In this document: in pieces, positions 1 through 5,448 of the stretch
Layout of the letters: the number at the start of each line of letters is the position of its first letter
Position numbering within the stretch: the stretch's first letter is position 1
Assembly: GCA_023515725.1 (NCBI GenBank)
Contig: JALDTO010000158.1
Location: forward strand, 1-64,000
Reading direction: 5' to 3'
DNA length: 64,000 bases
From: Amoeboaphelidium protococcarum X5
Taxonomy: Eukaryota; Fungi; Aphelidiomycota
Notes under the pieces: generated by a model
The model's input: the letters and a program-made list of their open reading frames with translations, nothing else
Databases searched by the model: none
Told to the model about the DNA's origin: nothing
Translations under genes and position numbers: made by a program

Positions 1-1
1 T

Positions 2-937
2 CGTCAATTAAGAAGGCTGAACCTCTTTAGCAATCAAAGAGCAGTTGATATATAAAGAGTGTGTTAAATGGCCACCTCAGCTTTAGGATCACAGTTCAAA
101 ATTATGGTAGACTTCAATGGTACATTCTATCGCCATCTGCGCAGGATTTACAATCGCAGCAAGAATCCTCTCGAGGCTAGCATCCATCTCGTAAAGACAG
201 CGCTTCCTCTTAATTAAATGGTGATGGTTTAAGGTGAGGCTAGGCCAATAAAAGACATTGTCACATTGGTGTTTGAAGGAGAGCAGACTTGCGAGAAATC
301 TCAGACTTCTCTCAAACGCGTCAATGCCAGACTGAAACAAATTCTGAAACTGCGTAATTGTTTGGAAAATCTGCCGGTTGATAAGAAAGTGAGTAAAGCA
401 AAGTGGTGCATGATTGGAAAGCTTGAGCGCTCTACTTGGCATTTTAAGACTGATGACGCGTCAAATTTGTAGTAGGAGCTGATAATAGCAGGCTACAATG
501 TCGAAGTAGCGTGTGGAGAGGCAGATGTTCACATTGCCAAGTGTAAAGATCCAGTCGTCGCAGTTAGCTTTGATTCTGATCTGTTCATGCATAAGAATGT
601 CTTGGTAGCTGCAAAGCCAACATTTGACTGCGGATTATTGAAATTTTTTGTACTGGATAGGAAAGTGGTCTGCGATAAATTGAATCTGACAAATTCTGCC
701 TGGGTTGCGCTCGCAGTAGTATCAGGTAACGATTACTCTGACAATGTAAAAGGATTCGGTTTTGGGCGCAATTTGAAAATCATTCGTAAGCTGATGGAAG
801 CGGGTCATTCAGATGTTAAGAGTATCGTTAGTTAGTATCAGAGTGTAATGGAAGTTGGTCCCATATTCTGTCAGGCCTTGCGTGTGTTCGACTCTAATCA
901 AGAGAGTCTCATTGTTCAGTCCCTAGAGGGGGGGGGG
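2..937 (+). CDS. XPG/FEN1/Exo1-family 5' nuclease domain (PIN-like + H3TH), 5'-truncated by the window edge; N-terminal part of a probable PIN-Fanzor fusion
   Basis: Frame 2 has no TGA from 2 to 1051 with TAR=Gln. Motifs in order: IMVDFNG, LVFEG, EKSQTSLKR, ACGEADVHIA, VSFDSDLF, VSGNDYSDNVKGFG. These match the acidic active-site motifs and helix-3-turn-helix of FEN1/XPG nucleases. Confidence 0.85.
928..937 (+). repeat. G10 homopolymer at the PIN/Fanzor frame junction
   Basis: CTAGA-G10-ATCCG. G11 or G8 would fuse frames 2 and 1 (...SLEGGGDPNYK...). Confidence 0.9.
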
Positions 938-3432
938 ATCCGAACTATAAAAAGAATTCACTTGATAATCTGTTCAAGCCTGTGGAGGATGAAGTTTTCG
1001 TCTCTATGGGTACATTGGAATGGATTCGACGTGAAATATCTGCTAGCTCATTGACAGCTGCTCATCGTCAGTATCACGAAGTTTATGCCTTACTGAATCT
1101 TTATTCCAAGTGGCATGAAAGCGTCCTTTAGCTGAAATCTGTAAAATTGGATGCTTACTAAGAGTGGAAAATCTAAAGCCGTCAAGTTGGAAAGTCTCGT
1201 GAAGAGGTGTCTTATTTATCTCTTCAAGAAAGGTGGAAAGGCTACAATAGATTTCTGCCTCTTTATAAGAAGGAGTTTGTTGATGATCGATAAAGTGGTA
1301 CGTCTGTATAAAGCGGTGGGCGATATATGTTCCAGGAGGTTGAATGGAATCGCAAGTCTAAATCGGAAATACCTCAGCCAAAGAAGTAGACACCAAAGTT
1401 CATCCGTGATATTGAAAGTCATGAAGAACGCTAGGAGGAGAGTGATGATACTACTTAATCTGACGATATCGAGGTAGCTCCGCGTAAAAAGAGACGTGTT
1501 TAGTCCTCCCAGACAGCGAGACGTGGCAACTATCGTGCTAGCAGCTCTGTAACTCGCGATAAATGTGATGCGCGTTCAAGTGGTTAGAAGAGAATTAATA
1601 CTGAAGAGACCTTGCTAATGAAAAAGCTGAAAAGTGCTCATTCTATGTCTACTCTGGAGGTTGGATCGTTGAGAAAATGCCTTAGCAAGGGGTCTTTGTC
1701 GTAGTAGTTGTAAAAGTAATTGGCCGCTACAATTCAGACAGTGGTGAGAGACATTAATCTTCTAAAAAGAATGGCTTAATTAGGTGTGCAATGGTTTATT
1801 GGCATTATTTTGGAGTAATATCCTGATGAAATATCCTTATTAGATGATATCTGCTACTCTGACACTCCGGGATAGGGAGGTAGGAAGTTTTGGTAAGGCG
1901 TGATTAGATTTTTACGTAATGGCAGATCTAATGCAAGCCAAAAAGGTGCCGCTGTTCTCAAATTTGGGCAATTGCTTGGATAGTAGATGAATATCATGAA
2001 TGGTTTGGAGAGAAAATTTGATCGCACTTTAAACATTACGTAAATTGTGGACTAGCTTGCTATTTAGTTAGATTCTGAGTTTGCGTCTCAAGTAATTGGC
2101 AGAGTCGAACTGTTGGCTGCACAAGTACTGGAGCATGATCCTGAGTTACGCAGTAGAATTGAGGAAATTGACAAGATGCCATCTGTGTTTTAAAAGTTTT
2201 AGTCTTTGAACGACCTGCTTCCCAAGGAACGTCAATATGGGTATCCTTTGTCATCTCCGCAAGATTGTTATGTTACGTTTACCGAAAATTCAATGATGAT
2301 GCTACTTTAGAGTTCAATTATTAATAATCCATAGATGGAGTAAGAGCGCAAACAAGAGCTTCTTCGAGATCTGCAATGTTATTATAGTGAAGGTGGGTTG
2401 GTAAAGTAGAAAGGTCATACATTACGAGAATGCTATGGTATTAAATTGAAGAAGGGATTGCGACTGCTCAGTCAGTATATGCCAGAAGCATGTGATACTA
2501 CGCGTAAAATACTATCTAACACTTTCATAACTAACGGTAAAGTTTTAAAAGTTCACTTGATTGATATCAGACGTAAGTAGTAGGTGAGACGTCTTGCTGG
2601 AAGTTAAAGTGAAGGCTTGCTAGAGGCTGCTTAGAGAAAAAGACTGAGTAAAGTTACAATGCAGGTGTCTGACACTGTTAAAGTTTAGCCGGATAAACTC
2701 TCTGAATACTGGATTTGCTGTCTCGACATTGGCGAAAGATACACTGCTGGAGTTGTAGCTGTCAAAGGGCAAGGAGAATCGCGCATAATTAGAGCATTAG
2801 CTTTGAAATCTTCTGCAGTCAATGAGCCTGGACGTAAGTTTAGAAAGTATCACCAAGGTAGGCCATCTAATATTACTCAGTTAGAACGGTCTATGTATCG
2901 CGGAGAAGAAGAGTCAATGGAATGCTATTGGGAAAGGTACATTGATATCTATTAGCAGTTAAGGTCATATTATTCATCTGAAATACGGCAAAAGAGACAT
3001 TGGGACTTTAAAAAGGCATAAAGAGCAGAGTTTGATAGAGCTACCAATGCTATTCTAAAAATGGTTGATGCTAGCGTATTTTAGAAGTCAAACGGCCAAG
3101 TGGTGTTTGGTATTGGAAATGCTCAATTTGACAGTAAGCAGACTATTCATCTGTCATTTTAGCGCCACTTTGTACAGAAGGTGAAGTCTCTAGGCTATCC
3201 TGTTGTCTTTTTGAATGAGTACCTCACTTCTTAGAAGGCGCCATGTTGTGGCTGTGTTTGTGAGAGCTTTGGAATGAGAATCAAGTACTGTAGAAATTGC
3301 CACAAGTTTTATCATCGAGATATCATGGCAGCTGAAAATCTTACACAGGTCCTTATATGTCTGATATGCGATGAGCCTCGACCAAAATATCTGTGCAGCA
3401 AGAATCAAAGTCGATCTCAAGAATCAGAATGA
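937..3432 (+). CDS. Fanzor (eukaryotic TnpB/Cas12-like RNA-guided RuvC endonuclease); probably the C-terminal part of one ORF of at least 1140 aa with the upstream PIN domain
   Basis: Frame 1 is open for about 831 codons to TGA at 3430-3432. Motifs: TFITNGKVLKV, RuvC-I CCLDIGERY (D 2725-2727), VVFGIGNAQF (Gly at the canonical RuvC-II Glu position), shifted RuvC-II FLNEYLTSQK (E 3217-3219), Zn ribbon PCCGC...YCRNC, RuvC-III HRDIMAAENL (D 3319-3321), terminal RPKYL. Confidence 0.9.
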
Positions 3433-3590
3433 GCTCAAATGCTTGGTAGATTTTCAAATTATGCGGCTTGGCAAGCGCGCTCCAAAGTTACTTGGGATTT
3501 TGAATGATTTCATTTGACTCCTAGTATTAGTATTACATTACAGTTCATTTTTATGGACAGCTGCACGCGCAGTTATACTTGCTGTTTATC
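3431..3590 (+). ncRNA. Candidate Fanzor omegaRNA scaffold
   Basis: Immediately 3' of the Fanzor stop. Nested pairings: GAGCTCAAATG 3431-3441 with CATTTGACTC 3511-3520; TTCAAA 3453-3458 with TTTGAA 3499-3504; hairpins at 3463-3480, 3481-3497 and 3559-3574. Confidence 0.45.
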
Positions 3591-3639: not shown

Positions 3640-5448
3640 TCAACTTTAGGTTGACAATCTCGACATTGTTGTGGCAATCTTTTAAATATGAGTGTCTGGG
3701 AAGAACGTTCTAAGATCTTATCTATCCATAAGTTTAAGCCACGAGAATTCGTATTTCTTCATTTACCCAACACACAACTTGCCTTCAGAGGGGAGTCTAG
3801 ATGAGACAACAATATACTCAATAACGCCTGGGTAGTTACGAGGGGAAATCAACTGTTTCTGATCAGATATTCGAGCAGTACCTCCCATCCACTTTCCAAT
3901 TGAAGATAGTATTAACTCTACTCTACCTTAATTACTTAACAGGGGATATTTGGCTTTTGACACATCAACAGCAACTGTCACCTCGAAAAATAGCGTAAAA
4001 TCATTTCCACCAAAGAAGATGAAATCCAAGCGAGCTTCTCCATTAGCAGAGTGTGCGACCAAGGTACCCACAGGATAGTCTTTCCATGATTTCTTAGGCT
4101 GATCTGCGGGAATAGTTAGAAAATGACGGATTTGCATCACTCTCTGATCCCTGATCCCGGAGAGATCAGAATAATTTAGCGTAATAGGTCCGCGAAATTA
4201 TAGGAGATTGAGAGCATATAATTTTTCAAATGCCAACCCCACTTGACTGGCATTGTCGCTATCCAAATTTCTTAATTCATGAACTGTCTCATTACTCCAC
4301 GCGGCTCCGTCACCACTCAGAAAAAGCATCTTGAAGAAAACGTCAATTGCATTGGAGCTGAGGGGTAATACCCGGCCACCGCCATCGTACGCCAAGCCAA
4401 TATCAAAAAAGCGAAGGTCAATATCCCGTAAGCGAACATGTACTATAACAAAGAACTTTACAAGCGAGTCAAGTACAGGCTATATCAACTGAGGATACTT
4501 TGTCTAAAACTCTATGAATCTCCCTTCAAACTCAGCTTGCCGGCTGTCGGCAAAGTGTTCTAAAAGAGCAGATAAACTGATATCTCCTTTGCGTCTCTAT
4601 TCGTCACTTAACATCACCAATTCTCGGGGGATATCGCCAGTTAGGCTGCGGATCTCAGCTATATATTCTTCGGTGAAATCAGGTTGGTTGACAACGTTAG
4701 CAAATTACGGGGAATCAAACCATGATGCAACCTCAGCATCAGTAAGAGATCCTACATTCAGAACATAACGCTCGTGGCCAGCTCTCAGAGCGCGACGGAA
4801 AGGAGAGTCAGCCGTGGCTGTCACAAAGACACAGCCACGTTTAAAGTTTCTTGACCAGTCAATTAGCGAAAATGGAGGATCAATGAGCGGATTTACACCA
4901 TTGCCAAATAGAGCCTGGGTTTCATCAAAAGCTAAAATGACTTCAACATCCTTTTCTCTAAGTATATCGGACCGAAAATCAATAAATAAGTCTTGAAGAT
5001 ATTATAACGACAGCTTTTCCTTGCGGGTAGCTTCATCCCATGACGCGCGACTATTCGGGGGGAAACAGTATGCGTACTTCTTTCTAATATCAGGCCTGAC
5101 ATATTAAAGCCCAGCAAGCACAGCATCAAACAGATAAGCATACCAGAATGCAGGTGATGGGTGGCCAGATTTAAGCCAGTCATCGCACAGTGGAATGTAA
5201 ATGACAAACTATCCCTCCCCACGTGCTTTGTGCACAACATAGAACATGATTGCGCTTTTACCAATGCCCATGGGTCCAGCTAAATACACGCCGATGCGGC
5301 TCTGGTCTTTTACCGTGTCTTGCACGTATTTCCAAACGTCTTTAGCACATTACCTTTCAATAAACCCTTGATTGTCCCATGAGCTAAGTGCTTGTTTAGG
5401 AAGGAATTGTAAGTCTTCTGGAAGTGGAACGGTGATTCTTTCGCCCAT
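3640..5448 (-). CDS. P-loop NTPase + restriction-endonuclease-fold protein (Crinkler/RHS-type NTPase+REase architecture), 602 aa
   Basis: Intronless ORF with TAR=Gln. Walker A LAGPMGIGKS, Walker B VILAFDET, STAND-like TGDIPREL, then GLAFEK helix, ARLDFIFF and LFFEVTV (PD-(D/E)xK-like). Confidence 0.75.

Follow-up and report, generated by a model that had tools for sequence, protein, structure and literature searches.

A FEN1/Exo1-family 5' nuclease fused to a Fanzor1 in mobile elements of Amoeboaphelidium protococcarum: a candidate cut-and-resect RNA-guided enzyme

The left end of a 64,000-nt stretch of DNA (the window) from Amoeboaphelidium protococcarum, a parasite of algae, read with TAA and TAG as Gln (TAR=Gln), had been described from its letters as encoding an XPG/FEN1 5' nuclease fused to a Fanzor RNA-guided nuclease and hidden by the genetic code. 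This raised the question of whether the two nucleases are indeed parts of one functional polypeptide and, if so, what a 5' nuclease would do at the front of a Fanzor.

Reading frame and genetic code

With TAR=Gln, frame 2 stays open over window positions 2-1051 and frame 1 over 742-3429, neither being open in the standard code, and all the PIN and Fanzor motifs named in the preliminary description were found in this translation where it had placed them. The features of the coding region are as follows.

2..927, + strand: FEN1/Exo1/XPG-family PIN 5' nuclease with H3TH, frame 2 (profile search, structure comparison, residue retention)
110, 275, 296, 317, 518, 524, 572, 578 and 731, + strand: acidic and basic residues of the PIN site (residue retention)
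928..937, + strand: run of ten G, five more than in the sister copies, shifting the frame
934..1632, + strand: linker of about 230 aa, a helical part and then a low-confidence charged region with basic clusters (model)
1633..3432, + strand: complete Fanzor1-type nuclease with WED/REC, RuvC and zinc ribbon (structure comparison; PF07282 above cut-off)
2725, 3115 and 3217, + strand: RuvC-I Asp, Gly at the canonical RuvC-II place and shifted Glu
3244-3300, 3319 and 3430-3432, + strand: C4 zinc ribbon, RuvC-III Asp and TGA stop

The start codon is on the overlapping contig C344 (protein start MGVKG), 20 nt ahead of the first base of the window. Because the PIN part (2-931) is read in frame 2 and the Fanzor part (934-3432) in frame 1, the window holds no single frame, and the break is the G10 run, the sole run of ten G within it. 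The sister copies on contigs C155 (99%), C179 (96%) and C162 carry G5 at this place, and with TAR=Gln the frame runs unbroken for 1,148 codons in the C179 copy and for at least 1,141 in the C155 copy (loci L016 and L026). Contigs from four public sequencing runs were likewise free of the extra five G (4/4), one of them covering exactly the window locus with its flank; a separate 1-nt loss at position 760 was found in that locus-spanning run and in one other. As three sister copies and four runs agree, the extra five G are probably an assembly homopolymer error, or they may be a private mutation, and the same G5 evidence ruled out both two separate overlapping genes and a programmed frameshift. 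The single polypeptide previously proposed therefore exists in the sister copies, whereas in the window it is split over two frames by the G10 run.

The reassigned code is supported by four columns in which homologs using the standard code have a conserved Gln and the A. protococcarum gene has TAA, and an intact A. protococcarum copy, P0156, is already annotated at NCBI with TAR=Gln. The Fanzor frame, which had been said to be wholly absent from the standard-code ORF track, is represented there by two small pieces, 2803-2955 and 3274-3432. As there are homologs in the standard code and database entries with the right translation, the statement that the fusion is hidden by the code was too strong: the architecture escaped notice through a PIN domain that scores below Pfam cut-offs, and Pfam searches with the stop-free pieces were nearly blank.

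Folds, active sites and distribution of the fusion

A structure model built for P0156 (pLDDT 77) retrieved Fanzor1 structures first and FEN1/Exo1 next in a structure search. In pairwise comparisons (VIA), residues 1-287 matched FEN1 and Exo1 with Z 17.9 each (rmsd 3.0), and the C-terminal 600 residues matched PpFz1 with Z 17.9 over 481 residues, followed by SpuFz1 (Z 16.7) and GtFz1 (Z 16.2), with Cas12 and TnpB lower. The structural check suggested with the preliminary description thus came out in favor of both halves. The linker between them has a pLDDT below 50 across much of model residues 371-507, and its basic clusters are possible nuclear localization signals.

The best profile match of the PIN domain was human Exo1 (E 4.5e-15), with all metal ligands in register, and human FEN1 followed with E 1e-10, the lead of Exo1 being narrow over archaeal FEN1 and Rad2. 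For its placement among the Exo1, FEN1, GEN1 and XPG subfamilies, the fold comparison gave Exo1 and FEN1 tied in Z. The domain shares with human Exo1, FEN1 and Rad2/XPG the PIN fold, the helical arch, the H3TH motif, the metal ligands and an N-terminal Met-Gly; its site comprises seven acidic ligands along with a Lys and an Arg, family A (the element family of the window) having Glu at the Asp78 position. The nine site residues are retained in 20-24 of 24 full-length homologs, and the Lys and Arg of the helical arch are invariant. It differs from those enzymes in its low identity (16-18%), in being mobile and fused to a predicted RNA-guided nuclease and, in the case of XPG, in that its N and I regions are not interrupted.

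The C-terminal part has the D-E-D triad with the Glu shifted beside the zinc finger, the C4 ribbon and the RD motif, the triad with shifted Glu belonging to the definition of Fanzor1 (PMC10711439), and it aligns with PpFz1 of Parasitella parasitica, SpuFz1 and GtFz1 over 451-487 residues of the same WED/REC/RuvC/TNB fold. Among the 24 homologs the RuvC-I Asp and the shifted Glu are each kept in 23 and the RuvC-III Asp in all. Fanzor1 has DPG at RuvC-I "near exclusively" (PMC10711439), whereas family A has DIG and the fusion clade mostly D-hydrophobic-G (DPG in 2/24), with the catalytic Asp retained, and the WED motif is TNG instead of TDG, T and G being invariant. We treated the non-DPG RuvC-I as a clade trait that does not appear to disqualify the protein as a Fanzor1. 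At about 1,150 aa, the fusion exceeds the usual 600-700 aa of Fanzor1 by an N-terminal FEN1/Exo1 domain of about 300 aa and the linker. Between two family A copies, dN/dS was about 0.19 for PIN, 0.5 for the linker, which evolves fastest, and 0.17 for RuvC, values indicating that both nuclease domains are under purifying selection. A dead PIN or a chance juxtaposition was ruled out by these ratios together with the homolog counts and the retained site residues.

Further copies were found in the genome, and full-length fusions in the standard code are common in soil fungi of the Mortierellaceae and in metagenomes, so that the proposed single-ORF homologs do exist: dozens of independent proteins with both active sites, along with the intact sister copies and the structure matches, bear out a FEN1/XPG-family nuclease fused to a Fanzor. 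Eleven proteins were retrieved with the PIN piece as sole query, each also matching the Fanzor end, and a search with the Fanzor end alone returned 80, mostly from Mortierellaceae, of which 52 carry PIN. PIN was present in 27/27 of the Fanzor-found homologs of at least 1,100 aa, a length filter that favors long proteins, and in 20/22 metagenome loci with room upstream, several of these being near-duplicates. A profile search for close kin without PIN returned fusions only, in a word-limited search that may pass over such kin. The PIN tree and the unrooted, quick-method RuvC tree have their main splits in common, and PIN and RuvC pairwise identities are correlated (rho 0.85). Near-complete retention of both sites in 24 proteins and congruent domain trees point to one old fusion event. 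No relatives were found in viral contigs, and Fanzors and XPG-like proteins occur in BFVD only as separate proteins. Neither the principal papers on Fanzors nor a review from 2026 mention a PIN-Fanzor, and within the literature covered, which took in few subscription papers and not Repbase, we found no paper describing this variant of Fanzor1; a 1,219-aa A. occidentale protein with, by eye, a PIN-like start is listed unremarked in a supplementary table of Saito 2023. Thirteen weak matches that cover just the zinc-ribbon end and contain hardly any or no TAR codons lie on contigs C200, C205, C13, C212, C244, C211, C154, C146, C264, C98 and C162, and probably represent a second TnpB/Fanzor-like family in the A. 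protococcarum genome.

Carrier elements and predicted omega RNA

The preliminary description was silent on the carrier element, with its right end at 3524, and on the RNA region at 3463-3526, to which the following features belong.

1..3524, + strand: right-hand 3.5 kb of a ~4.66-kb non-autonomous, probably Helitron-type element, family A (end of copy alignments; empty sites)
3463..3480, + strand: predicted omega-RNA stem-loop 1 (same sequence in both families, A and B; covarying across distant homologs)
3489..3526, + strand: predicted omega-RNA stem-loop 2 (folds; basal stem closed by the host TA just beyond the element end)
3527..3541, + strand: predicted guide in the host flank (differs between copies; one mismatch to the homeologous empty site)

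Family A, with about three full and several truncated copies, begins with 5'-TCC, found on C344, and ends with CTAG followed by host TA. Insertion took place before TA and left no target duplication, as seen from an empty homeologous site (L027, on C98) and from an empty allele in run X5; a second candidate empty site, L064, was discarded as its junction was too diverged. The right junctions are followed by T in 13/13 cases, a T assignable equally to the other end, and by TA in 12/13. Canonical Helitrons have an A before the 5' end and a GC-rich hairpin about 11 nt from the 3' end, whereas in family A the left flank is mostly T (A in 1/6), the 3' stem is AT-rich and a GC hairpin lies 45 nt upstream. 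Lacking the canonical A target and the terminal hairpin, family A is likely, but not proven, to be of Helitron type. Family B (about 45-50% protein identity to family A; four near-full copies, mostly frameshifted) agrees with an autonomous Helitron on C179 (L033) in the first ~100 nt and in the end, CTTG followed by TA, and none of four RepHel loci carries the family A left end. The Helitron-borne Fanzor1 elements CRe-1,2,3 (Bao and Jurka 2013, PMC3627910) are alike in being non-autonomous, in sharing ends with an autonomous Helitron, in their T-rich left flank and in their many truncated copies. They differ in being Helitron2 elements with asymmetric inverted repeats, which were not seen in family A, and no PIN was reported for them; family A also has no GC-rich hairpin immediately before its 3' end.

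A different carrier surrounds the Entomortierella homolog at L056, with inverted repeats of ~22 nt and a ~10-bp duplication in a MuDR-like arrangement (one locus); no TIRs were found at four other Mortierellaceae loci. The presence of the fusion in both Helitron-type and TIR-type carriers suggests that PIN goes with the Fanzor and not with a transposase, and capture by several transposon kinds is also known for Fanzor1.

Several other sequences were noted around these elements. Two ~490-bp non-coding elements (L051:1153-1641 and L053:1496-1982) have the first 330 nt of family A and a different right end followed by TA, and are possibly third-family ends or stand-alone RNA loci. The first ~30 nt of one family B copy (L022:4525-4560) are inverted relative to its sister copies. 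One family A copy on C98 is split into a left and a right piece separated by 16.5 kb (L018:5390-6410, L019:3891-6133, L038:2417-4434), with an integrase-like frame between them and a 2-kb duplication abutting the right piece. An insertion of ~230 bp close to the left terminus of the C179 copy (L016:8212-8446) recurs 1.3 kb downstream of the C155 copy, and window 50866-51123 is a short dispersed repeat common to L037, L047 and L048 (84-90%). The neighboring host gene (window 3643-5448, - strand; 602 aa, P-loop ATPase-like) matches L054:4223-4347, a segment that immediately follows the metagenomic homolog P0003, in opposite orientation and with 49% identity over 41 aa, a match that probably reflects a large gene family.

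Stem-loop 1, an 18-nt hairpin 30 nt past the stop, has ten occurrences in the genome and none in the control, and distant homologs have a recognizable form of it downstream of their stop codons. Over 17 sequences its outer stem is 94% paired, with one pair showing seven double changes, above all shuffles, in a set that is small, related and partly motif-picked. The fold of stem-loop 2 is clear in family A and L054 and is not the MFE in family B. Target bases within the RNA scaffold have also been reported for Fanzor1 RNAs (PMC10711439), which have comparable stems at the element right end, and the boundary and length of the guide were taken over from published Fanzor1s (PMC10711439, PMC13565253). 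On the grounds of covarying stems and Fanzor precedent, we infer that the right end encodes an omega RNA with a flank-derived guide; it would be contiguous with the frame end and overlap it in some homologs. An Rfam search returned nothing. A C-UUCG-G tetraloop hairpin follows stem-loop 1 at 14/45 loci (L065, L066, L075 and 11 more) and at none of the upstream controls, which supports an RNA function in the Mortierellaceae-like branch.

Role of the PIN domain

Fanzors cut DNA under the direction of a guide taken from the flank, and the prevailing model of what OMEGA nucleases do is restorative homing (PMC10432273, PMC13565253). Exo1-family enzymes resect 5' ends. Starting from the observed fusion, folds, intact sites, purifying selection, mobility, termini and conserved RNA stem, a Fanzor1 clade with an N-terminal FEN1/Exo1-family 5' nuclease, here the cargo of a non-autonomous Helitron-type element, might act as follows. 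RepHel would move the element in trans, as the shared ends suggest; the right end would yield the omega RNA with its guide extending into the flank; RuvC would cut the element-free copy of the site; and the tethered PIN would degrade the strands that end 5' at the break. The resulting 3' overhangs would direct repair away from end joining and into homologous recombination with the sister or allele that carries the element, so that the element would be restored or spread.

We lean slightly toward this RNA-guided cutting of the empty site followed by tethered 5' resection that favors homing, in view of the unbroken L016 and L026 frames, both folds, the retained sites, the low dN/dS, the PIN counts in long homologs and metagenome loci, the congruent trees, the association of PIN with the Fanzor across carriers and the restorative homing model (PMC13565253, PMC10432273). 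Against it, empty sites are still found beside filled ones (L027, run X5), a Helitron does not usually vacate its donor site (PMC13565253), ordinary Fanzor1s are maintained with no PIN domain, and the 5' flanks have no clear common TAM beyond TA. That the proteins form an old, undescribed clade of two-nuclease RNA-guided enzymes, whose tethered 5' exonuclease resects the break and commits it to homologous recombination, has in our estimate about even chances. If so, they would be self-contained homing machines and natural editors for HDR or long deletions. With a second, end-processing nuclease retained across aphelids, Mortierellaceae and kinds of carrier, two point mutants would allow a direct test of the homing model, and the standard-code, intronless members, which can be expressed as they are, are candidate natural cut-and-process editors. 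Engineered Cas/TnpB-exonuclease fusions combine a programmable cut with a tethered exonuclease; the present one is natural, apparently old, under selection and transposon-borne.

Because Exo1 and FEN1 are tied in Z, flap trimming fits the fold equally well, and PIN might be a structure-specific flap or junction endonuclease that, with no long resection, clips the overhang or the displaced strand of the R-loop to release the enzyme, or trims intermediates of recombination. The ends made by Fanzor cuts are staggered and the arch Lys and Arg are invariant, in agreement with such a role; as the profile nevertheless puts Exo1 first, if narrowly, we consider it unlikely, though the most serious of the alternatives. 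A role on RNA, either maturing the omega RNA 5' end from the mRNA or removing RNA from hybrids, would be in line with the contiguity of the predicted RNA and the frame end and with one vhs-like match in the BFVD comparison, and FEN-like PIN relatives include RNases. It is rather improbable, given that the best matches are DNA-processing FEN1/Exo1/Rad2 enzymes with the H3TH motif and that PIN-less Fanzors make their RNA without it.

Two further roles appear still more remote, the less probable by a little being destruction instead of homing, in which cutting and resection would kill or disable element-free chromosomes or invading DNA as addiction or defense. In its favor, extensive resection would be toxic without a template and many element copies are truncated, but the guides would be ordinary insertion flanks, no guide array was seen and the empty homeologs survive. 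The other, also very improbable, is an aid to transposition independent of the Fanzor, such as flap removal during Helitron integration. Family B, with both its termini common to an autonomous Helitron, would suit it; however, the frame of the autonomous Helitron contains no such domain, PIN is co-inherited with RuvC, and the same fusion occurs in the TIR element at L056 with its ~10-bp duplication.
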